Shown here piece after piece: positions 3,455 to 35,381 of a stretch of DNA of 64,000 nt (positions are counted from its first letter, which is position 1; each line of letters opens with the position of its first letter). Location: positions 268,271 to 332,270 of the IMG/VR virus record IMGVR_UViG_3300009703_004110. One strand, 5' to 3'. The translations under genes were made by a program, and so were the position numbers. Below the pieces are notes generated by a model that did not search any database, was not told the DNA's origin, and was given only the letters and a program-made list of their open reading frames with translations.

Positions 3455-3974
3455 GCTTTCTCTCTTTTACTTTCTTTCGTTTTAATTTTCCGAGAGCCGA
3501 TTTATTAGGAACAGATATCATCTGTTCTTCATCAATCTGGTCACCAAAAGAATAGTCTGCTGGTATAGCATTACACCAACTTACTTCTTTCTCGGCAATG
3601 CGATTCCATCTTTTGACCTTTATTAAGTCGCCATGTTCTGCACCACGTACTTGCTCTATGTTTTCGAAAAGTCTGGTAATTCTATCTGAATTTAATGCAA
3701 ATATAGGATCATTCAAAATTACCACGGAGGCGTTTGTACCCTCTCTGACCATATGCTTTGAGCCGTACCACCCATTATATGTAACAGTGTGAACACAATG
3801 CGAATAGTTCGAGCCGGCACCCTTGGTGATAGAGGTGACAACGCCGACATACATATTTCGCTCGCCCTGCCCCGCCTTGCTATAGGCAATTACCTGTCCT
3901 CTGACAAGCTCATTCCCCATTATATCAAGTACAGGTTTCTCTGAGTTTACTAGTTCATATATTTCATCACTCAT
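3423..3974 (-). CDS. hypothetical protein (N-terminus D-x-x-G-x-E-x-x-x-G like 9175-9522)
   Basis: 183-aa ORF downstream of the promoter motif at 3981-4010. Confidence 0.65.
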   Translation of the reverse strand: MSDEIYELVNSEKPVLDIMGNELVRGQVIAYSKAGQGERNMYVGVVTSITKGAGSNYSHCVHTVTYNGWYGSKHMVREGTNASVVILNDPIFALNSDRITRLFENIEQVRGAEHGDLIKVKRWNRIAEKEVSWCNAIPADYSFGDQIDEEQMISVPNKSALGKLKRKKVKERKHVKEAQTKSS

Positions 3975-3980
3975 TTATAT

Positions 3981-4010
3981 ATTACCCTCAGCTTTTTCTT
4001 TTTATGTCAG
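3981..4010 (-). promoter_or_regulatory. putative phage promoter, class A motif
   Basis: CTGACA-TAAAAAGAAAAAGCTGAG-GGTAAT; the same 30-nt pattern occurs at 4 other intergenic sites. Confidence 0.65.
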
Positions 4011-4025
4011 GTTTATATTCTCAAA

Positions 4026-4207
4026 TGGTAGGGGTTAGAAGACTCGAACTTCTTTGCGCCATAATAGTCCAACTCCAACTTCATGTTGCATATCGATCGC
4101 TTTGCAACTTCCATTCTTGCTGAAAACGAGCCGCCACATCACCCGTTCCTAGGTTGGGTATTGCGCACACTCTTATGGTTCGTTTTACACATATAAACTA
4201 AACCCCT
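4026..4207 (-). ncRNA. tRNA-like RNA with an insert of about 110 nt replacing the anticodon loop
   Basis: acceptor AGGGGTT/AACCCCT+ACCA, D arm GTTT/AAAC, T arm AGAAG-TTCGAGT-CTTCT, CCATAA/TTATGG closing the insert. Confidence 0.7.
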
Positions 4208-4210
4208 CAA

Positions 4211-4285
4211 TGGAGCGGATAACTGGATTCGAACCAGCGACATTTACGTTGGCAACGTAATGCTCTACCACTGAGCTATATCCGC
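4211..4285 (-). tRNA. tRNA-Gly(GCC)
   Basis: cloverleaf, TTACG-TTGCCAA-CGTAA, CCA end. Confidence 0.95.
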
Positions 4286-4571
4286 AAATGGGCCAGTCCT
4301 CATTTCTTTTTAAGTCTGACTCACCGCCTTCTTAAAATACCAGATTAGCAGTATTCTAAGCAATTTGTTCTGGCCGCAACCCAGAACACCGCCTTTAGTA
4401 ATAATTTGTCCACTCCTGATCAAATTGGTGGGACACCGCCTTTTAAATTACAATACATATGTGAGGAAGATGTATCATGCGATTGGTTCATCGACAACGC
4501 TTTTTTAGCTGGCCTTGAACACACCGTCTATAAAAATATTAGCTTATCACATGACACACCTTCCTGTTTTA

Positions 4572-5750
4572 TTACTCTACAATACTGGTAACGTAACCGG
4601 CGCCGACAGTCTTGCCTCCCTCACGAATGGCAAAACGCATCTGCTCTTCCATACCAACAGGCTTCTGTAGACGGAAAGTAATATCCGCACGATCACCTGG
4701 GTTTACGATACCCACCTCTCCTACATCAATAGTACCAGTTACATCAGTAGTTCCGAAGAAAAACTGAGGACTGTAACCAGTTCCGAATGGACGGTGACGG
4801 CCGCCCTCGTCCTTAGTAAGAACAAGAACGTGAGCAGTTGCCTCAATGTGAGGAACAATAGCACCAGGAGCAGTAATTACCTGACCTCTCTGGACGCCAT
4901 CACGCTTCACACCACGAAGTAATAGACCAACGTTCATACCAGCTACTGCTGCATCAACATCCTTGTGGAAAGCCTGAGTACCAGTTACCACAGTGTCTTC
5001 GCCTTCGCTGTCAAGACCAACGATCTCAACCTTATCACCAACCCGTAGGGTTCCTCTTTCTACCTTGCCAGTAACTACGGTTCCACGACCCTTGATGTTA
5101 AATACATCTTCAATAGGCATCATGAAAGGAGAGTCATAGTCACGAGTAGGCTCAGGAATAGCATCCAAAGCTGTTACCAACTCTGTAATACAATTCAAAG
5201 CCTCGGCCTCGGCGTCTCCGGCGAGTGCGGCATTAAGAGCTTGTAGAGCGCTACCAAAGATAAAGGCCACATTGGTGTAACCATTGGACTCCAGTTGCTC
5301 TTCCACTTCCATCTCAACTAACTCAAGTAACTCAGGATCAGCTACGTCACACTTGTTAACGAAAACAACCATGTGCTCAACGCCGACCTGACGAGCCAAT
5401 AGAATGTGCTCAACGGTCTGCTTCTGTGGTCCTTGAGAACCATCGACAAGCAAGATTGCTCCATCCATCTGAGACGCGCCAGTAATCATGTTCTTGATAT
5501 AGTCAGCGTGACCCGGACAGTCAATGTGTGCATAGTGACGAGTGTCACTCTCGTATTCTACGTGAGAGGTATTAATGGTAATACCACGCTCCCTCTCTTC
5601 TTTGGCATTGTCAATCTCATCAAAAGACTTAGCCTTGCTTCCCTGCAATACTGCCTGTACCTGAGTAATAGCAGCAGTTAGAGTAGTCTTACCATGATCA
5701 ACGTGGCCGATGGTTCCTACATTTATATGGCACTTAGATTCTGTACTCAT
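4572..5750 (-). CDS. tuf: elongation factor Tu
   Basis: [25 protein letters not shown]; start reassigned to ATG 5750 (RBS, ATGA overlap with upstream HNH). Confidence 0.97.
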
Positions 5751-9671: not shown

Positions 9672-10283
9672 CTATTTAAAATTATACTTAGCCTTAATCT
9701 CCAAATCAAGAGACGGTATACGAATATGCTGAATCATTCCGTGACTCTTTGCTTCTTCAGGAGTCAGCCACCAATCTGCGTGACCGCGATTGTGAGTCTC
9801 GGTTAGAAAATGCTCTTCATCTTTGCCACAGTTTCTTGCCATTCTTCTGTATACAAGCTGGTTAAGTCTTTCGGTTTCTGCGGCACCAGCTTTTATTTCC
9901 TCAACCTTACCCCATTCCATACTTGAAACATCATGAATTAAGACAGTACTATTGGGTCCGGCAAAACGCATACCATCCTGCCCACAAGTCAAGAGGATAG
10001 CTCCACAACTCATAGCCTTACCTTCAACAATTGTTGCTACAGGCAAAGAGGCTGACTTAATACAATCCATCATAGCAAGCAAAGAATATACTTGGCCGCC
10101 ATATGAGTCAATTACAATTGGGATAACAGGCTGCCCTGTGCCATGAGCCTCTTCCATACTTTCAGTAAATTTCTTAACCGCATCTTCATTAAATTTATTA
10201 ACGCGGATAATTACCGGAGGTATAACCAAATCTTTTGGCTTACGTACAGTTAAAAGAGGGTCAATCTTGCAGGTCGCTCTCAT
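9672..10283 (-). CDS. clpP: ClpP-like serine protease
   Basis: IDSYGG, AMSCGA (catalytic Ser), LIHD, WWLTPEEA. Confidence 0.9.
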   Translation of the reverse strand: MRATCKIDPLLTVRKPKDLVIPPVIIRVNKFNEDAVKKFTESMEEAHGTGQPVIPIVIDSYGGQVYSLLAMMDCIKSASLPVATIVEGKAMSCGAILLTCGQDGMRFAGPNSTVLIHDVSSMEWGKVEEIKAGAAETERLNQLVYRRMARNCGKDEEHFLTETHNRGHADWWLTPEEAKSHGMIQHIRIPSLDLEIKAKYNFK

Positions 10284-11165
10284 CGCTTTCTCCCTTTGTA
10301 TTTTCTGTCAAAGCTTGCTAATTTTTGCAAGTCAATATTGGCAGGAGAATTCCTCATCTTCCCGCCATCAATAAATAAGTCTAATGCCTGATCTCTAGTG
10401 ATAATAGCCGTAGACTTATCATCTTTGCGCGGGCCCCATCCTAAGCGTAGAAGGAAGTTTAGCATAGCACCTGGATCGACTCCAGAGTCCATGTAACTAA
10501 TCATAGATGCAGCACCGTCCCGTTTTACTTAACTTCTTCTTATCTTTAAACAGAAGGCCGGTATGGGCGTATTGCGGGACTTTAATTCCTGACATTGGAA
10601 TAGTGCTCAAAAAATAATAAAGCACAATCTGCTTACCAGTATTCTTCTGGTGGTCAACACCGCGAATAACATAATTTACACCAATATCAAAGTCGATATC
10701 GTCACAGACATTGGCAAAGTTATATGTTGGCGATCCATTAGACTTAATTAAAACCATATTTGAAATATAATCAAAGTCTGATTGTCCAATCTTAATATCT
10801 CCAGCAATATTATCATGCCATGATTTGCAAGGAAAGTTGTCCCAATCCTGGAAATCTAAAACTACTGCTCCATCGTCTAATCGCTTTGCGAAACCGCCAT
10901 CAATCAGACACTCTGCTACGTGCTGATAAAGATCGAATCGGTTACTCTGATAAACGAGCATATCATAGTCAAGACTGAGCCAGTCCATAACTTTTAAAAT
11001 ATCATCAACTTTGCTTTGATCATTTCTTGCAATATCTGTATCATCAATTCTTAAGATGAATTTTCCGTCTGTAGCCCGAGCTGCCAACCAATTAAAGTAA
11101 GCGGTACGAGCCGTCCCCATATGCATATCACCCGTGGGGCTCGGTGCTATTCTTGTATTAAACAT
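10280..11165 (-). pseudogene. gltX: short glutamate--tRNA ligase (GluRS/GluQ-like catalytic domain) split by a 1-nt frameshift
   Basis: RIAPSPTG-HMGT, LRIDDTD, VIRGVDH; removing one A at 10523-10526 restores KLSKRDGA and joins the two ORFs (about 294 aa). Confidence 0.85.
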
Positions 11166-11385
11166 GCCTACACTCATAATGAAAGTCATCCAAAGTCATA
11201 GCCTTATATTCTGTGAACTCCGAATCTTTATTTAATTTATGTGCAGCCAATACAGCGGTATCTTCTTTAAAGGAAGGACCAGCAGTAATGCTCCATAAAC
11301 CAGGGTCATTACTATAAGGATTGCGAGACCAGCTTGCTACAACCCATAGATCGTAAACGCTTACGTCAGCTTCAGGTATTTCCAT
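11158..11385 (-). CDS. hypothetical protein
   Basis: 75-aa ORF with RBS GAGGCGG. Confidence 0.55.
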   Translation of the reverse strand: MEIPEADVSVYDLWVVASWSRNPYSNDPGLWSITAGPSFKEDTAVLAAHKLNKDSEFTEYKAMTLDDFHYECRHV

Positions 11386-11928: not shown

Positions 11929-13278
11929 CTAAAGGGTCTTTAGCAGGCTATCAGACTCAGTGGCTTCCGCCACATCATTATCATCAAGCCTTTCAAAATC
12001 CGCATCAGGTACTTCTACATATCCCTGACCGATCATGCTTCTAGAAACTAGATCAATCTCCATTTCTCCGCCGCACCATTCGCAAGCCCTCTCTCCCGAG
12101 ACATAATGGCTGCCGGTACTTTTCTGGCAGACTTCACAGATGGTCGCATAAGCAAGAAGCTGATCATCACCGTTATTATCCATTGGCTCAGGATCAACTA
12201 AGGTAAGTTGTGAGCCACTGGACTTTGTAGTAGTAATTGAAGACTTAGACCACTTCTCTCTATTCTCCTTATTGATTTCTGTTTCAATCTGGCGAAGACT
12301 CTTTCCATCTCCATCCTTAATCAACCAGAAGTCTGGAGTACTAGAGCCAGGATATTCCCTATACTTAGGTAGCACTAACGGCTTATTGTAAGTAATAAGC
12401 TCTTGTCGATCCATCTTAATAGACATATGCCAGCCATCGGCACTCATCTTGGATCTTGGACCAAAGTAGTTTGAGCCGCCATTGTGACCAACTGAGGTCA
12501 TACCAAACTGACGCATAGTAACGGCGCCCTTTAGAGGCTCATCAGCGCACTCAAATCTCCACATTGAAAACATTTTTTCACGCATTTCATCGCGCTTGCT
12601 TTCATCAGGAAACATCTTCTCCAGAGCTTCTTCGTTAGTAGTAGATCCGTCCACTAAGAAAAATGGGTTGCAGCCCAGAGAGGCAATAAACGGATGATAA
12701 TCTTCAAAGCGCCTTGTGTTTCTTGGAACTAGAATCCTGCTAATTCCGAGTCCATAAGGTTCGATTAATTGATGTAATACAGTAAATGTATACTGCTGTT
12801 GCAATCCATCTTTGGTGCACATATCATTTAACTTATACCACTCTCGGTCGTCTCTGTCCAGCTTCATTCCAAGCCAATGCTGCATATAATCATTGGTTGC
12901 ATTATACGCACAACAGGCAACAGTTCTGTTCTTAGTAATTCTATGTGGAATGTCATTAATATCCATAGCGATGGCAGGAATATACCCTTTTCCGTGAGCA
13001 TATTTCCATACCTCATCCTTCGGAGATAACGTAACTTTCCAGTGGTCAAAATTACCACGTTCAAAAATCTCACCCATTTTATATTCGCTGAGAATCTTTA
13101 TCTCTTCGAAATCGGGATCAGTTCTGTCCGTCATAACAATAGCGGCATATCCAGTCTTCTTTGGCGGGACATACTTCTTTGGCCTCGGTGTGTTACGAGA
13201 GGTGTTGCCATAATAGCCACCATACCCTCCATATCCTCCGCCTGAGCTACCTTGTGATCTACCGTTATTCATCTTCAC
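11929..13278 (-). CDS. putative papain-fold cysteine protease with C-terminal zinc ribbon
   Basis: CAYNATNDYMQ resembles the Josephin/C39 catalytic helix (CAxHxLNNLLQ); later VGH; CEVC..CEWC; G/Y-rich N-terminus. Confidence 0.45.
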   Translation of the reverse strand: MKMNNGRSQGSSGGGYGGYGGYYGNTSRNTPRPKKYVPPKKTGYAAIVMTDRTDPDFEEIKILSEYKMGEIFERGNFDHWKVTLSPKDEVWKYAHGKGYIPAIAMDINDIPHRITKNRTVACCAYNATNDYMQHWLGMKLDRDDREWYKLNDMCTKDGLQQQYTFTVLHQLIEPYGLGISRILVPRNTRRFEDYHPFIASLGCNPFFLVDGSTTNEEALEKMFPDESKRDEMREKMFSMWRFECADEPLKGAVTMRQFGMTSVGHNGGSNYFGPRSKMSADGWHMSIKMDRQELITYNKPLVLPKYREYPGSSTPDFWLIKDGDGKSLRQIETEINKENREKWSKSSITTTKSSGSQLTLVDPEPMDNNGDDQLLAYATICEVCQKSTGSHYVSGERACEWCGGEMEIDLVSRSMIGQGYVEVPDADFERLDDNDVAEATESDSLLKTL

Positions 13279-13996
13279 TCCCTACATGAACAGGAAAGAA
13301 ATCATCATGGAGGAACATATCATCCATTTGCAACTGGCAACCATTAATGTCTATATTCCAACATGTCATAGTTCCTTCGTCCTCTGCGCCTTCAAGAATA
13401 TTCCAAGGATCAAGTCCGAAAAAGAATCCAGCAGCCTTTGCAATACCCTGGACCAGCATAACTCCCGCAGTACGGTACTTATACATTTCACACGGAGGCT
13501 CTTTAATATCCTGCTCCTTCAAGGTACGTCCACCAACAACATCCGGTCGGAATGGAAAGGTATCAAAGTTGGGAGAGGCCCAATTGATAATTCCCTGTCC
13601 TTGCCTTGAGATACCTGTATGCATACAAGGTCCAGAAACTCCAGCTAATGCGAAGCCCCAAAGTAACTGACGAGTAGGAATGTTATCTACACAGTCAATA
13701 ATCAGATCAGCGTCACTAAGCAGTTGCTTTGCATTAAAGGCCGTTAGCTTTTCAGTAACTGCCTCAGAAGTAATGCCAGGGTATGAACTGGCATAACGGG
13801 CACAAGTCTCAGCCTTCATAATTCCATCTTCTGCTTCAACGCCATCTACGTTTTGATTGGCCGCGTTTCTTCCTTCCCAGGTATCAAAATCAACGAACCT
13901 AAAGTTAGCTGATACGTCCTGAGAATAAAGAAGCTTCGGAATTTCATCAGCAACATGACTTCCAATGAAGCCACAACCAATTACTACAATATTCAT
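13265..13996 (-). CDS. ThiF/MoeB (E1-like) adenylyltransferase
   Basis: GCGFIG, VDFD..RN..NQ, K, IIDCVDN..R, crossover-loop Cys (PPCE); no CxxC zinc pairs. Confidence 0.9.
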   Translation of the reverse strand: MNIVVIGCGFIGSHVADEIPKLLYSQDVSANFRFVDFDTWEGRNAANQNVDGVEAEDGIMKAETCARYASSYPGITSEAVTEKLTAFNAKQLLSDADLIIDCVDNIPTRQLLWGFALAGVSGPCMHTGISRQGQGIINWASPNFDTFPFRPDVVGGRTLKEQDIKEPPCEMYKYRTAGVMLVQGIAKAAGFFFGLDPWNILEGAEDEGTMTCWNIDINGCQLQMDDMFLHDDFFPVHVGSEDE

Positions 13997-14016
13997 TTAT
14001 TTGCCTTGGTTAAATG

Positions 14017-15597
14017 TTATCGGCCCTGCATGGCGCGCATCTTATTCAGAACTGCTGCCTTGCGGTCCTTCTTCTTTGACTTATTACCAAAGAATACAAT
14101 TGGAGCTTCGGTGATCTGTAGATTGCATCGCTCTGCAAATGGTCCGGCAAGCCAATCCTCTAGTAACCAGTCGCCATTCTTCTGGTCGACTCTTCCTGTA
14201 GCCTTGGTCCACTTTGAAACTCTCTGACACCAAGCGGACTGCTGCATACGCATATTACCATCCTCATCTTCGAACACTACAACGTATCCTCGCTGAGAAC
14301 CTCTTACTCCAACAATGTTAGAGCCGTGATATGAAATAGCAATATTGAAATGAGTCCCCATCTTTCCGACACCGTAGGAATTCTTGTCCTTAACCCAGTC
14401 ATGAATCTGGGCAGAGTCCTTAAATCTAATTCCTACAGCCTCTGTGATCTTAAATCCAGGGAATCCTCGTGCAGCAAGATAGTCGTTAATCTTGCGCTTG
14501 AATACAGGACCAGCCTCTTTGGACAGAAGCTCTCTTGTGTGCGCATTATACGCCTTCTTGTTTTCTACAAGGCGTGCCTGCATTAGAGTGTGTGCTTCTT
14601 CGGCTAATTGATCAGAGCGTACAAAGGCCCCTGTCTCAATATCATAAGCGAGAATATGAAGAACGGCCTCGTAGGATCCAGTGTGATTATCTTTCATAAA
14701 TGACGGCCTACCAACAGCAAACATCGAATGACTATGAGACTCCAAATGGATAAATAGATTTACAGCCAATTGGTCCGAACCCTTGATTGCAGGTAGCACA
14801 AACTTAGTTGCACTTACAAGCTTTCGGTTAGCACCAAGATAATAAATATAATTCTTCTGACTACCCCAATCGCCAGAAGTGACGCTGTACGCTTGAACGA
14901 TAACTGGAATATATCGATTGTGCAAAACAGTATACTTAGCGTACTTATCATCTGCCTTCTCAGGTGCAGCCTCAAGAACTTTCCTGCCCTTCTTTACAGC
15001 CCTCTTTGGTAGCTCAATAAAGTCAAAGTTCTTAATTTCTTTCTGGATAGCCTTAAAGGCCGCAGACTTCTTGATTTCGGCTTCTGTCTCAACACCGTAA
15101 GGCATTACCTTCTTAAACTCAGACTGCATAATTGTAGCAAGTTCCGAATTATCAGTTGTCACATGAGCATTCTCTTGATCGATCTTAGGGCAGCTAAGAA
15201 GCTTGGGCAATCTGTCCATATAGATGCCTTTGCCGATAAACTTCTGACCGGTTCCTCGCATATACTTATAGATTCTTACCAAAGAGAACTTGCCAGCTTC
15301 AGGAAAGAATACGTATCTAAAGTTCTTTGCAGACTTCTTAATCATACTTGGAAGCTCATAAATACCGGGCTCATCAACTACGATACTCATACCCTCTCTA
15401 GAGGCGTCGCCAGGAAGACTTCCAAATGCCGCCGTGATTGGTGCGGGCATATAATAATAGCTATACCCACCTACATCAACATGCTGATAAGCATGAGCGT
15501 AGTGATTTGAATATCCATATCGATTCCTACGTCGACGAACCGAATTAATATCTTCAAGTGAGGTTTGTAAAGACGCAATTACTTCTACCGTGTGCAT
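14017..15597 (-). CDS. hypothetical protein ending -GR
   Basis: 526-aa ORF, RBS AGGAGAG. Confidence 0.75.
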   Translation of the reverse strand: MHTVEVIASLQTSLEDINSVRRRRNRYGYSNHYAHAYQHVDVGGYSYYYMPAPITAAFGSLPGDASREGMSIVVDEPGIYELPSMIKKSAKNFRYVFFPEAGKFSLVRIYKYMRGTGQKFIGKGIYMDRLPKLLSCPKIDQENAHVTTDNSELATIMQSEFKKVMPYGVETEAEIKKSAAFKAIQKEIKNFDFIELPKRAVKKGRKVLEAAPEKADDKYAKYTVLHNRYIPVIVQAYSVTSGDWGSQKNYIYYLGANRKLVSATKFVLPAIKGSDQLAVNLFIHLESHSHSMFAVGRPSFMKDNHTGSYEAVLHILAYDIETGAFVRSDQLAEEAHTLMQARLVENKKAYNAHTRELLSKEAGPVFKRKINDYLAARGFPGFKITEAVGIRFKDSAQIHDWVKDKNSYGVGKMGTHFNIAISYHGSNIVGVRGSQRGYVVVFEDEDGNMRMQQSAWCQRVSKWTKATGRVDQKNGDWLLEDWLAGPFAERCNLQITEAPIVFFGNKSKKKDRKAAVLNKMRAMQGR

Positions 15598-15639
15598 TAT
15601 ATACTCTCCTAAGTCTTAATTTAGTATCATGCAAACATG

Positions 15640-15673
15640 AAACAGCGCAGGCTAACTAAAGTCTGCGCTGTTT
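15640..15673 (-). terminator. strong hairpin (terminator or attenuator)
   Basis: AAACAGCGCAGAC/GCCTGCGCTGTTT stem between the 151-aa and 526-aa genes. Confidence 0.65.
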
Positions 15674-15708
15674 AAACAAAGTCCTGCTAAGTCGTTCTAA
15701 GGATCGGT

Positions 15709-16164
15709 TTATCGGCCCCAGGTACCCACGGCAGTAACGCGCCAGAAACGCTCGTCACCAACTTCCATAGGACCAGCGATGTTGATCGCATCCTGAGAGA
15801 TAACGTAACCGTCACCCTGATCGGTGGTGTTGTAGACGTGACCCTTCGGGCGAGTATCTAGAACCCAACGAACAACAGACTCAGCTAGAGCTTCCGCAGG
15901 AGGAACCTGACCAGAGGCCAGATATTCAGCGGTAGCATCAGCGAAAGCACCCTGCATTCTTAGTGCAGCCTCCGGATCGCTTTCCAGCAACTTAGTAAAA
16001 GCAGCGGTATCAAACTCCGGTGCCGCAACCTTAACGCCACCTTTGACACCAAGATCCGCAACGGAAACCTGCTCATTAAGCTCCACGGTGGAGAGAGAAT
16101 CCCTGCCGCGAAGTGTCAAACGAATAAGAACCTTATCGGTATCAAGTACATGTAATTCAGCCAT
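15709..16164 (-). CDS. candidate ubiquitin-like (beta-grasp) protein ending -TWGR
   Basis: two N-terminal strands followed by SVADL, final strand FWRVTAV then GTWGR; upstream of the E1; fold is inferred. Confidence 0.45.
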   Translation of the reverse strand: MAELHVLDTDKVLIRLTLRGRDSLSTVELNEQVSVADLGVKGGVKVAAPEFDTAAFTKLLESDPEAALRMQGAFADATAEYLASGQVPPAEALAESVVRWVLDTRPKGHVYNTTDQGDGYVISQDAINIAGPMEVGDERFWRVTAVGTWGR

Positions 16165-16196
16165 TTATTCTATCTCCTGATTGTTAATTAGACCGC

Positions 16197-16655
16197 TTAT
16201 CGGCCCTTGTTTCGTCTCATTCTACGAGACTCAAACTCTCTAAGTTTGCGCTCATATCGCGCCTCAAACATACTATTCCATGCCGCAGAAATCCTACTAA
16301 GAAATCCAACCGGCTCTGTCATATCAACGTCAAGATTTTCGGAACGTTCCATCCATCTATCAATTAATTTCTGGTCTGATGCCGACACCTCCTCTTCTAC
16401 CGTATCAGGTAGACTTTCCGAAGCTGTCATCCATCTTTCAATATCTGCCATATCAGACTGAGAAAGACCGGCCATTGGGTCCGTCTTAAGTCCTTCGTAA
16501 TAAGCAAGAGTGTGCTCAGAACCATCGCCTAAAGCATCAGCTCTACTATTCAGTTCCTCACTGTACGAACCACTTGAGTTGGTTACGAACCTGTCGTATC
16601 TACTATATACGCTGTCCATAAGCCCGCGAAAACTGCCGCGTCCTTCCTCTTTCAT
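16197..16655 (-). CDS. hypothetical protein ending -GR
   Basis: 152 aa with internal repeat SDxxxI(E/D)RWM; first gene after the promoter motif. Confidence 0.7.
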   Translation of the reverse strand: MKEEGRGSFRGLMDSVYSRYDRFVTNSSGSYSEELNSRADALGDGSEHTLAYYEGLKTDPMAGLSQSDMADIERWMTASESLPDTVEEEVSASDQKLIDRWMERSENLDVDMTEPVGFLSRISAAWNSMFEARYERKLREFESRRMRRNKGR

Positions 16656-16693
16656 TATTACCTCGCTTTATAATCGGTCGGCCTTTTCAACCT

Positions 16694-16723
16694 ATTACCT
16701 ACCGATTTTTCTTTTTATGACAA
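16694..16723 (-). promoter_or_regulatory. putative phage promoter, class A motif
   Basis: TTGTCA-TAAAAAGAAAAATCGGTA-GGTAAT. Confidence 0.65.
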
Positions 16724-16749: not shown

Positions 16750-17169
16750 CTATACTCTGTCGATGGTAACTGGTACATTACTTTTCTTGGCGATATTGAT
16801 CGTCATATATGTTCCAGAGTACCTTGTCTTTCCGGTCCAAAAAGCGTGCATCTTATCTACTGATGAAACTATAAGTTCATTTCTAACCCTATAGTCATTC
16901 TTACCCTCAGAGCCTTTTGGGGCGTTTATTCTAACATCGCTGTTCTTGATTGATTCCCAATCAACAGCCTTCCTATTGTATGGTACAACTGCAATAACAT
17001 ACAGTCCGCTCTCTTTAGCTTTCTTGGCGACCAAAGCATCGGCGCCTTCACATGCTCCGTGATATACAATAGCGTTATCCGGCAGAGACCTAATCCATGC
17101 CGTAATGGCATCATCTAATAACGGTGTGACTGTTCTTGTTCCGGTCATACCAAACTTAGGCCGTATCAT
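16750..17169 (-). CDS. SLOG-superfamily protein (YspA/DprA-like)
   Basis: GMTGTR, HGACEGAD, RNELIV, SGTYMTI. Confidence 0.75.
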   Translation of the reverse strand: MIRPKFGMTGTRTVTPLLDDAITAWIRSLPDNAIVYHGACEGADALVAKKAKESGLYVIAVVPYNRKAVDWESIKNSDVRINAPKGSEGKNDYRVRNELIVSSVDKMHAFWTGKTRYSGTYMTINIAKKSNVPVTIDRV

Positions 17170-23575: not shown

Positions 23576-24115
23576 ATGATTAGAGACTTTGAATTTATCG
23601 GCCTTGAGTTTGGCTGCGGAAATACTCCAGCTAAGCCAGAATATTACGGAGTTGATATCAGAGGCTTTGAAAGTGTTAAGTATGTATGTAACGCCTGGGA
23701 TATAACAGACCACGTTGAGCCTGAATCAATAGACGATATATATAGCAAACATTTTCTCGAGCATCTAACTTTTTATGATGCTAACCGAACTCTCGAAAGT
23801 TGGTATAAGATTTTAAAAAAGAAAGGTACTCTTCATGTTATTGTTCCTGACTTAATATATCATATAAATCAATTTTTAGATCCAAATAGAACCAGACGAA
23901 TGAAAGTCAAGAAAGGAATCTGGACCGTCGAAGATATGGCTGGATTTGGATTTTGGGGATTTCAAAGACAAGCTGAACTTGGAGAGACTTGGGATATACA
24001 CAAGTCTGGTTATGACTTTGACCTTCTAAAAAGAAAGCTTATAGAGCATGGGTTTCATAAAGTCACGCGACTTGAAGCCGGAAGGGAACACCTCTCTGTT
24101 ATCGCATATAAATAA
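23576..24115 (+). CDS. class I SAM-dependent methyltransferase
   Basis: LEFGCG, HFLEH, IVPD; RBS GGAG; inverted between two tRNAs. Confidence 0.8.
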   Translation: MIRDFEFIGLEFGCGNTPAKPEYYGVDIRGFESVKYVCNAWDITDHVEPESIDDIYSKHFLEHLTFYDANRTLESWYKILKKKGTLHVIVPDLIYHINQFLDPNRTRRMKVKKGIWTVEDMAGFGFWGFQRQAELGETWDIHKSGYDFDLLKRKLIEHGFHKVTRLEAGREHLSVIAYK

Positions 24116-25948: not shown

Positions 25949-26353
25949 CTATATAAATTTGTCAAGATTGTAAACTATTGATTCCCCAGCCCTCTTTGGT
26001 ATTACCCCGAGAACATCTTCAATTGGAACCTCTACAATAAAGTCGTTGCCCTTATCGAAAGACATTTGGACAAAGACTCTTTTCTTTTCTTGTCTATTAG
26101 GATCTCTTTCTATTATATACAAAAAGTCTGTGCCACGTATATAATAAGCTTCTGTTCCGTTTAGAAATCCAATCAGTGGCATAAAACAATTAATATCTTC
26201 TGCTAATGGGTATTCTTTTTTAATTCGCTCTTTAACACGCGGATTGGCATAGGATAGGTAAAGATCATAATATGCCAGAGTTCTAATTAGAATGGTTATA
26301 AAACGTCTAATCGTTCGCTTTTGTAATTTATACATTAGCTCGTTTTTGTTCAT
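25949..26353 (-). CDS. hypothetical protein, C-terminal LDLF-module family
   Basis: ends IVYNLDKFI; start placed at the ATG with an RBS. Confidence 0.6.
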   Translation of the reverse strand: MNKNELMYKLQKRTIRRFITILIRTLAYYDLYLSYANPRVKERIKKEYPLAEDINCFMPLIGFLNGTEAYYIRGTDFLYIIERDPNRQEKKRVFVQMSFDKGNDFIVEVPIEDVLGVIPKRAGESIVYNLDKFI

Positions 26354-35305: not shown

Positions 35306-35381
35306 TGGCACGCTGTAAGGGATTCGAACCCTTGACGCGGAGGTCTAGAATCTCCCGCTCTGACCGCTGAGCTAACAGCGC
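35306..35381 (-). tRNA. amber suppressor tRNA (anticodon CTA)
   Basis: canonical 76-nt numbering gives GGAGA-TTCTAGA-CCTCC; A31-C39 mismatch, G73, CCA end. Confidence 0.85.

Follow-up and report, generated by a model that had tools for sequence, protein, structure and literature searches.

Does a bacteriophage with a giant genome encode its own pathway for attaching one protein to another through a C-terminal glycine, in the manner of ubiquitin? This question is raised by a run of five co-oriented genes, on the minus strand at 16655..11929 of a 64,000-nucleotide stretch (hereafter, the window) of the virus record IMGVR_UViG_3300009703_004110, in which three consecutive genes encode proteins ending in Gly-Arg and the fourth encodes an enzyme of the ThiF/E1 type. 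The original prediction, made from the sequence alone, was that a Josephin-like protease encoded by the fifth gene trims the terminal Arg from up to three modifiers, exposing Gly for activation by the E1.

Gene content of the locus

The genes were found where the original prediction placed them, and the observation on which it rested was confirmed, with the exception of a promoter motif: a sigma-70 scan identified no promoter-like site just upstream of the first gene. The genes are g1 (16655..16197, 152 aa, ending in NKGR), g2 (16164..15709, 151 aa, ending in GTWGR), g3 (15597..14017, 526 aa, ending in MQGR), g4 (13996..13265, 243 aa), and g5 (13272..11929, 447 aa, or 449 aa if translated from the GTG at 13278). 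No thiamine or Moco genes are located nearby.

All three Gly-Arg ends are encoded by the identical 9-mer GGCCGATAA, which occurs four times in the window against 0.40 expected, a count that none of 100 shuffled sequences reached. Judging from composition, the probability of a Gly-Arg end is about 0.0044 per ORF, and that of the GGC-CGA-TAA codon choice is a further 0.016; three such ends in a row are therefore not due to chance.

A stable, terminator-like hairpin with a 10+2 bp GC-rich stem follows g2 (15672..15641). It was not called by a generic terminator scan because the loop limit of that scan is 8 nt. Among nine relatives (loci denoted by L numbers) in which the g2-g3 spacer was inspected by eye, a GC-rich hairpin, often followed by a T-run, is visible in eight, all but L009, and also in L028.

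Conservation of the cassette in huge phages

Eleven independent huge-phage loci, on contigs of 19-414 kb, retain the order g2, g3, E1, g5, whereas the neighboring genes change; the cassette was found only on huge-phage contigs. In the window and in four relatives, the cassette is located among genes for IF3, RF1, aminoacyl-tRNA synthetase and tRNAs, but the core cassette also occurs in neighborhoods unrelated to translation, next to genes for UDG, rIIB, DNA ligase or RlaP. The E1 is the most conserved protein of the set, with 53-74% identity in nine of the ten relatives and 29% in the outlier, L009. The E1 and g5 genes overlap or abut in all loci, with the junction between -14 and +11 nt; in this phage, the g5 start at 13272 overlaps the E1 stop by 8 nt.

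Only g2 retains its C-terminus across these loci. In an alignment of 20 g2 sequences, the last nine residues before the tail, R-V-T-A-V-G-T-W-G, are invariant among homologs that are 43-73% identical, and are followed by 0-3 variable residues. Further loci end in ATWG followed by ISLG, AVWG followed by I, TWG followed by Y, TWG followed by S, and ATWG without a tail. Overall, the protein either stops at the invariant Gly or carries 1-4 unconserved residues after it (R, C, Y, K, S, I, RC, GC, VCL or ISLG), which is the pattern of a ubiquitin-like precursor. In this phage, the codon for Gly150 is at 15717..15715, that for the one-residue Arg tail at 15714..15712, and the stop codon at 15711..15709. 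The linkage between g2 and the E1 gene holds in 11 of 11 loci.

By contrast, the Gly-Arg ends of g1 and g3 are specific to this phage, as no homolog of either protein ends in Gly-Arg or in Gly, an outcome that had been named beforehand as one that would refute the original prediction. Homologs of g1 (16197..16655) are encoded upstream of g2 in only 6-7 of the 11 loci, and their C-termini are unconserved (AKR, PKK, IGQ, LDK). The g1 protein, an accessory protein without an assigned function, contains two W-M-x-x-S-E-x-L repeats and belongs to no Pfam, PHROG, NCBIfam or PADLOC family.

The E1-type enzyme

The g4 protein is a minimal E1/ThiF-type enzyme. It passes the Pfam ThiF model (PF00899; 51.6 bits against a cut-off of 28.1, E-value 9e-14) and yields hits to the NCBIfam ThiF, UbaA and MoeB models, to MoeB and ThiF in a sequence search of the PDB, and to PADLOC Cap2 E1-E2 models, the latter weak (best E-value 5.7e-6) and covering only residues 2-135 in the Rossmann half. 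The GxGxxG motif maps to 13978..13961, the Mg-binding Asp104 to 13687..13685, and Cys169 to 13492..13490. Alignment with Escherichia coli ThiF and MoeB showed that G7, G9, G12, D36, D38, N44, Q48, K61, D101, D104, N105, R109 and C169 are invariant, that is, the phage enzyme retains every ATP/Mg-binding residue shared by ThiF and MoeB. Cys169, in or near the crossover loop, is invariant in 10 phage E1s and falls in the same alignment column as ThiF C184 and MoeB C187. The phage E1s lack the N-terminal ~30 residues of ThiF and MoeB, as well as both Cys pairs of their structural CxxC..CxxC zinc site, although not every E1 has this site.

Orphan partners

The g2 protein was modeled with AF2 at a pLDDT of 79.5, with a predicted topology of a beta-hairpin, three helices, and a second beta-hairpin. 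The beta-grasp fold anticipated for this protein was not confirmed: the best Foldseek match in the PDB had an E-value of 0.57, and streptokinase, the Sharpin UBL and PI3K entries appeared only at a probability of 0.11 or below. The first two of these are beta-grasp folds, as is the Ras-binding domain of PI3K, which need not be the region aligned. No Pfam, NCBIfam or PDB sequence hit linked g2 to the ubiquitin, ThiS, MoaD, Urm1 or Prok_Ub families, and hhalign against E. coli ThiS gave a probability of 0.3.

Homologs of g3 (14017..15597) are rare, with only 48 clusters found among 1.84 billion representative proteins. The conserved part of this protein consists of the C-terminal ~200 residues, where C457 (codon 14229..14227), located in an S-x-W-C-Q-R..W motif, W463, D471 and W482 are invariant. 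No match was detected in Pfam, the PDB or PADLOC at the sequence level. The gene is duplicated in L013 and L014.

The g5 protein, which contains the CCAYNATNDYMQ and GHNGG motifs, has a disordered, Gly/Tyr-rich N-terminus and a C-terminal CxxC..CxxC Zn ribbon (12138..12073). In its core, Cys121 (12912..12910) is invariant in the family alignment, and His263 (12486..12484) is nearly invariant, becoming invariant if the two most distant sequences are shifted by 3 residues. In the AF2 model, core residues 40-345 have a pLDDT above 90, and Cys121 is the first residue of the helix 121-134. The conserved Cys at a helix N-terminus and the downstream His are features of Josephin and papain-like peptidases. 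However, the Josephin-like label was not supported: Foldseek with the full-length model, not split into domains, yielded no fold match, with a best E-value of 1.0 in the PDB and 0.37 in BFVD and no Josephin, papain, DUB or any other peptidase among the hits. A Pfam scan of 18 family members at E-values up to 1 returned only zinc-finger noise, and a profile search of the PDB found nothing.

No Pfam or PADLOC hit to an E2 was obtained for g1, g3 or g5 or their homologs, in agreement with the original prediction, in which no E2 was recognized; for g3, this rests on sequence comparison alone. A JAB/JAMM peptidase or DUF6527 protease was not detected in the cassette either, although one relative, L015, has a weak Prok-JAB gene 4 kb upstream.

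A putative pathway for activation of a single modifier

Taken together, these findings partly support the original interpretation: there is a real E1, one adjacent protein has exactly the proposed signature of an invariant C-terminal Gly followed by a dispensable residue, and the fifth protein has an invariant Cys and a conserved His, but neither the multiple modifiers nor the Josephin-like assignment is supported. The explanation we favor, with moderate confidence only, is that this is a conserved cassette specific to huge phages, built around E1-type activation of the C-terminal glycine of one protein. In this view, g2 is the modifier or carrier, with its VGTWG end exposed either directly or after removal of a short non-conserved tail (Arg151 in this phage). 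The E1 would adenylate Gly150 with ATP and probably take it onto Cys169, after which the acyl group would pass to, or be handled by, the two orphan proteins that each carry an invariant Cys, g3 and the translationally coupled g5, ending on a protein or another nucleophile. With its Cys/His pair and Zn ribbon, g5 is the best candidate for a tail-trimming or deconjugating thiol peptidase; because it is retained in phages whose g2 has no tail, trimming cannot be its only job. The Gly-Arg ends of g1 and g3 would be a peculiarity of this one genome that is not part of the conserved mechanism.

The hairpin after g2 in most relatives is consistent with an abundant substrate gene placed ahead of less-expressed enzyme genes. 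Known bacterial Ubl pathways likewise process a precursor to expose Gly and physically couple the peptidase to the E1 (PMC11601596). The gene order, the conservation pattern, the E1 active-site residues and the invariant or conserved Cys and His residues are established by the present analysis, whereas adenylation of g2 by the E1, thioester transfer, removal of the Arg or any other peptidase activity, and conjugation, with whatever target, are inferred from sequence without biochemical evidence. The lack of a significant beta-grasp match for g2, of a detectable E2, JAB or DUF6527 component, of a known peptidase fold in g5, and of the N-terminal segment and zinc site in the E1 weighs against this scenario.

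Sulfur transfer and other possible roles

A sulfur-carrier function is not excluded, although it appears considerably less likely. Under this scenario, g2 would be a carrier of the ThiS/MoaD/Urm1/TtuB type, the terminal Gly of which is adenylated by the E1 and converted to a thiocarboxylate, with g3 and/or g5 using the sulfur to thiolate a tRNA base, a cofactor or another metabolite. The best family matches of the E1 are ThiF, UbaA and MoeB; the cassette lies among translation genes in the window and four relatives; sulfur carriers with trimmed C-terminal tails, such as QbsE and CysO, exist; and the invariant cysteines of g3 and g5 could relay persulfide. However, g2 ends in TWG rather than Gly-Gly, no rhodanese, cysteine desulfurase, PP-loop or known synthase domain was detected in the cassette, no Fe-S-type Cys cluster is conserved in g3 or g5, and the core cassette also occurs away from translation genes.

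It is also conceivable, but unlikely, that the E1 activates the g2 terminus for a modification other than protein tagging, as in MccB or PaaA, such as amidation, nucleotidylation, cyclization or ligation of a small molecule, with g3 and g5 acting as tailoring enzymes. ThiF-like enzymes carry out such reactions in secondary metabolism (PMC12596934, PMC12250964), no E2 was detected, and a precursor gene followed by a hairpin and then by enzyme genes resembles a RiPP-style layout. Against this possibility, g2 is a 150-aa protein, predicted to be folded and conserved along its whole length, rather than a leader-core peptide, and its terminal residue is Gly, not the Asn or Glu typical of those pathways. 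Furthermore, g4 starts directly at the GxGxxG motif, without the N-terminal segment present in E. coli ThiF and MoeB, whereas RiPP E1s carry their peptide-clamp (RRE) domain at the N-terminus.

The full original model, with g1, g2 and g3 all serving as modifiers trimmed by a Josephin-like g5, is doubtful. The identity of the three ends down to the 9-mer is far beyond chance and is otherwise unexplained, but the ends of g1 and g3 are not conserved, g5 shows no detectable similarity to Josephin or papain in fold or sequence, and E1s normally recognize the body of the modifier, not only its last residues. Least likely, the E1 might act on a non-protein substrate, for example, tRNA, as TcdA/CsdL does (E1-superfamily enzymes acting on tRNA exist, PMC4405576, and tRNA and translation genes surround the cassette in this clade), with the g2 terminus being an unrelated structural feature, but no TcdA-family hit was obtained, g2 and the E1 are strictly linked in all 11 loci whatever the neighborhood, and a variable tail after an invariant Gly is hard to explain structurally.

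Relationship to ubiquitin-like and sulfur-carrier systems

Among known systems, the Bub (bacterial ubiquitination-like, formerly 6E/DUF6527) operons (Ye et al., PMC11601596) are similarly compact prokaryotic operons, with a small homodimer-type E1 resembling ThiF and UBA5, a modifier whose conserved Gly must be exposed by cleavage, non-canonical downstream partners, and a peptidase physically coupled to the E1, by fusion in BubCD and, for the candidate peptidase g5, by translational coupling. However, Bub includes recognizable beta-grasp Ubls, a UBC-fold E2, a JAB peptidase and a DUF6527 serine protease, none of which was detected here; the Bub E1 lacks a crossover Cys and works through oxyesters, whereas the phage E1 retains Cys169; and Bub is bacterial and linked to defense. 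The Bil (BilABCD, bacterial ISG15-like) anti-phage system also consists of four genes centered on an E1 and a Gly-terminated modifier, which in Bil is conjugated to protein targets, but it includes a UBC E2, a JAB deubiquitinase and a multi-domain E1 (IAD-AAD-CYS), whereas the phage E1 is a single 243-aa domain with orphan partners.

In type II CBASS Cap2/Cap3, to which the Rossmann half of the phage E1 shows weak similarity, the C-terminus of a non-ubiquitin protein is activated, as proposed here, but the phage cassette has no detected E2 domain, JAB domain, CD-NTase or effector. The ThiF-ThiS and MoeB-MoaD pairs are the best sequence relatives of the E1, share all adenylation residues and the Cys column, and include a carrier ending in Gly; they differ in that the phage protein lacks a Gly-Gly end, is twice as long as the carriers and has no detectable similarity to them, the phage E1 has no Zn site, and no sulfur-transfer or synthase genes were found in the cassette. 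Finally, there is no sequence or demonstrated fold relationship with the eukaryotic Ubl precursors (ubiquitin, Atg8, SUMO, NEDD8), and the candidate protease is not a member of any known DUB or Atg4 family, but in those precursors, as in g2, an invariant terminal Gly is followed by a short, variable, dispensable tail.

Genomic context and the Gly-Arg-ending genes

The window belongs to a huge-phage contig (IMGVR_UViG_3300009703_004110, 332 kb; also represented by Ga0114933_10000002, 391 kb), in which nearly all genes are on the minus strand. The region encodes 20 tRNAs, including one with a CTA anticodon, along with translation proteins such as IF3 and a truncated GluRS. The latter (window positions 10280-11189, minus strand), a tRNA-synt_1c domain protein of GluQRS size, is split into overlapping ORFs of 230 and 74 aa in different frames, whereas its orthologs in two related loci, L004 and L006, are single genes of 290-307 aa as called. 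The split may be a frameshift, a pseudogene or a sequencing error.

Five co-oriented minus-strand ORFs occupy positions 16655..11929: g1 (152 aa, ending in ..NKGR), g2 (151 aa, ending in ..GTWGR), g3 (526 aa, ending in ..MQGR), g4 (243 aa), and g5 (449 aa from the GTG at 13278, or 447 aa from the ATG at 13272, which is preceded by a GGAG ribosome-binding site). The three Gly-Arg ends are encoded by the same nine bases, GGCCGATAA, at 16197-16205, 15709-15717 and 14017-14025 (minus strand), with a G preceding the 9-mer in all three copies. The window holds four copies of this 9-mer against 0.40 expected, the fourth of which, at 23595..23603, is not at an ORF end. From composition, a Gly-Arg end has a probability of about 0.0044 per ORF, and the codon triplet a further 0.016. 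Thus, the observation of three consecutive Gly-Arg-ending genes, made in the original prediction, is real and non-random. A stable hairpin follows g2, but the promoter motif that had been proposed in front of g1 was not supported by a sigma-70 scan.

A minimal E1-like enzyme

The g4 protein passes the Pfam ThiF threshold (51.6 bits against 28.1) and also matches the ThiF, UbaA and MoeB models, the MoeB and ThiF structures and, over its Rossmann half only, the Cap2 E1-E2 models. In an alignment with Escherichia coli ThiF and MoeB and with ten phage orthologs, the GxGxxG motif, D36, D38, N44, Q48, K61, the D101-x-x-D104-N105 motif, R109, and C169, which falls in the alignment column of ThiF C184 and MoeB C187, are all invariant. 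The phage enzyme lacks the N-terminal ~30 residues and the CxxC zinc site. It is a minimal E1 but, judging from sequence alone, looks catalytically competent.

A tblastn search with the E1 yielded three distant ThiF-like hits, in unrelated modules. In a different huge phage (L016; LR756511.1, 595 kb), a JAB/MPN+ peptidase gene with an H-x-H..S..D motif is located about 800 nt upstream of, and co-oriented with, an unrelated 217-aa ThiF-like E1 (positions 3654-5579), with two small opposite-strand ORFs nearby, one of them ending in Gly. This is a separate E1 module, closer in type to classical prokaryotic Ubl systems.

Only the g2 terminus is conserved among related loci

Homologs of g5, g3 and g2 exist only in metagenomic data, mostly on contigs of 100-420 kb; a metagenome scan for g2 returned only six loci. 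A DNA search of GenBank phages with the cassette found no match, and neither did a tblastn search of phages with g3. Examination of the contigs carrying these homologs showed the same gene order in 11 independent loci, namely, the window and the loci designated L003, L004, L006, L008, L009 (divergent), L010, L013, L014, L015 and L028.

The ends of g1 and g3 are not conserved: g3 homologs end in ..MQS, ..QNNL, ..ASLN or ..NIAK, and g1 homologs end in ..AKR, ..PKK or ..IGQ. By contrast, the last nine residues of g2 before the tail, R-V-T-A-V-G-T-W-G, are invariant in an alignment of 20 sequences at 48-73% identity, after which the protein either stops or continues for one to three unconserved residues (R, Y, C, K, RC, GC or VCL). 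More distant loci end in ..ATWG+ISLG, ..AVWG+I, ..TWG+S, ..TWG+Y or ..ATWG. This is the classic signature of a modifier or carrier whose terminal Gly carboxylate is the reactive group and whose tail is dispensable. The original interpretation, in which all three Gly-Arg proteins were potential modifiers trimmed by a Josephin-like protease and activated by the E1, is therefore only partly supported: of the three proposed modifiers, one is supported, whereas the other two fail the criterion that the prediction itself had set, conservation of the Gly-Arg ends in homologs.

Some of the tail-less g2 genes stop at TGA where others have a Cys codon, which suggested selenocysteine decoding. This possibility was rejected because the g2 gene of L028 stops at TAA, no tRNA-Sec is present, and the downstream hairpin also follows TAA-terminated genes.

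In this phage only, g1 and g3 carry the same GGCCGATAA ending as g2; the relatives have none. This could reflect lineage-specific selection for a Gly-Arg terminus, with g1 and g3 recruited as extra substrates of the putative trimming and activating machinery, or else, a cause at the nucleic acid level, such as short-patch conversion or an RNA or DNA signal.

Architecture of the conserved core

The conserved order is g2, hairpin, g3, E1, g5. Among the nine relatives whose g2-g3 spacers were inspected, a GC-rich hairpin, often with a T-run, is visible in eight, and also in L028. The E1 stop and the g5 start overlap or lie within 11 nt of each other in every locus, which argues for co-translation and a likely complex. 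The g1 gene is present only in the closer six or seven loci. Conservation is highest for the E1 (53-74% identity, apart from 29% in the outlier L009), followed by g2 (45-72%), g5 (39-59%) and g3 (27-43%). The g3 gene is duplicated in two relatives, in tandem in L013 (6610-9515) and with a second copy 4 kb upstream in L014 (686-2191 and 6552-8069). Given that g3 is also the fastest-evolving core gene, this pattern would fit a specificity or target-recognition subunit.

The neighborhoods of the cassette differ: five loci have translation genes nearby, whereas others have UDG, rIIB, DNA ligase or RlaP, so the module is self-contained. A SLOG/YspA-like protein (16750-17169, minus strand; weak DprA and YAcAr Pfam hits; phrog_289) is encoded directly upstream of g1, but was rejected as a component of the system because it is shared only with L006. 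A 203-aa ORF that, by eye only, appears ClpP-like (9672-10283, minus strand) lies about 1.6 kb downstream of the cassette and has no counterpart in the flanks retrieved for the relatives. In L015 (583-2401), an AAA ATPase and a weak Prok-JAB gene lie about 4 kb upstream of the cassette, an arrangement that was not seen in the other loci. Scans of 185,579 GTDB reference genomes for g5 and for this E1 subfamily, which were limited to a few conserved patterns, did not detect the module.

The partner proteins g5, g3 and g2

Searches of Pfam, PHROG, NCBIfam and PADLOC with g1, g2, g3 and g5, both as single proteins and over whole families, returned nothing credible, and neither did PDB profile searches with g2, g3 and g5.

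Across 18 g5 homologs (window 11929-13272), Cys121 (numbered from the ATG start; motif V-A-x-C-A-[YF]-N-A-T) is invariant, and His263 in G-H-N-G-G-S-N-Y is conserved, as are D142, N202, N213, R273 and a C-terminal CxxC..CxxC ribbon. The AlphaFold model, which is confident (pLDDT above 90 over residues 40-345), places Cys121 at the N-terminus of a helix, an arrangement typical of thiol hydrolases and transferases. However, Foldseek found no significant match to this model in PDB (best E 1.0) or BFVD (best E 0.37), and no peptidase family was identified by sequence profiles. Thus, a thiol enzyme is plausible, but a Josephin-like enzyme is not supported. Because g5 is retained and conserved in phages whose g2 already ends at Gly, tail trimming cannot be its sole function, and we infer that it may also act in deconjugation or transfer.

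The g5 proteins start with a disordered, low-complexity segment rich in Gly, Tyr and Ser (residues 1-31, pLDDT below 50), and about half of them, including the very distant L028 copy, end in a [KR]-x-L-COOH motif following an acidic tail (..KTL, ..RSL, ..KGL, ..KSL), which could be a docking motif. The tRNA with the CTA anticodon (35306-35381, minus strand) is an amber suppressor that ARAGORN labels Pyl, and three pairs of adjacent same-frame ORFs are separated by a single TAG (stops at 25951, 48103 and 6361), which together may indicate TAG read-through or recoding in some genes. Read-through of the TAG stop of g5 itself was considered and rejected because its ..K-T-L end matches the [KR]-x-L ends of the homologs, so that this codon looks like a true stop.

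The g3 family is small, with 48 clusters among 1.84 billion representatives, and its invariant residues C457, W463, D471 and W482 map to the conserved C-terminal domain. Comparison of g5 with g3 using hhalign showed that the two are not paralogs. The g3 protein could be a thioester carrier (E2-like by function), an adaptor or a target.

The AF2 model of g2 (pLDDT 79.5) shows a beta-hairpin, three helices and a second beta-hairpin that ends at the presumed reactive Gly. A Foldseek search of PDB gave no significant match, with only noise-level hits to streptokinase and the Sharpin UBL, which are beta-grasp proteins, and to PI3K entries, where the Ras-binding domain has that fold but the aligned region might lie elsewhere. 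An hhalign comparison of g2 with ThiS indicated no relation.

Predicted mechanism and comparison with known systems

In the best-supported reading, g2 would mature by loss of Arg151, the E1 would adenylate Gly150 and probably form a thioester on Cys169, and the acyl group would then be passed on through g5 and/or g3 to an acceptor. What the analysis demonstrates is the anatomy of the cassette and its conservation; the chemistry, that is, trimming, adenylation, thioester formation and transfer, is inferred from the established E1 mechanism and from parallels with Bub, where the Ubl is cleaved to expose Gly by a peptidase fused to the E1 (PMC11601596).

The main rival explanation is a sulfur-carrier pathway, which is favored by the nearest relatives of the E1 and by the translation-gene context in this clade. 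However, g2 lacks a Gly-Gly end, no sulfur-transfer domain was detected, and the module also occurs in unrelated neighborhoods. MccB-like C-terminal tailoring and a TcdA-like tRNA role are less likely.

A more far-reaching possibility, which we consider tentative, is that huge phages carry their own protein-tagging system, analogous to ubiquitination but assembled from parts unrelated to the known ones. In this view, the modifier is a 150-aa protein with no demonstrated beta-grasp fold, the E1 is stripped down, and two new families of Cys enzymes (g3 and g5) replace the E2, E3 and DUB. The phage would use such a system during infection to modify host or phage proteins, for example, in takeover, counter-defense or control of translation.

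Currently, E1-driven conjugation in prokaryotes is known as a bacterial defense against phages (Bil, Bub, CBASS Cap2), or else, as sulfur transfer. A conserved module of an E1 and a Gly-terminated protein encoded by the phage itself would put this chemistry on the viral side of the conflict. Its partners have no detectable homologs in PDB, Pfam, PADLOC or, in scans limited to a few conserved patterns, the 185,579 reference genomes, and it would therefore add two new enzyme families, and possibly a new modifier fold, to the ubiquitin-like world; the system is directly testable because the predicted covalent intermediates and the tryptic remnant are defined. We found no description of this cassette in the literature that could be searched, and it could represent a new system if conjugation is shown. 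The combination of an E1 with a Gly-terminated protein is already known, but the phage cassette differs from Bil, Bub, CBASS and ThiS/MoaD in every partner, and in being phage-encoded.
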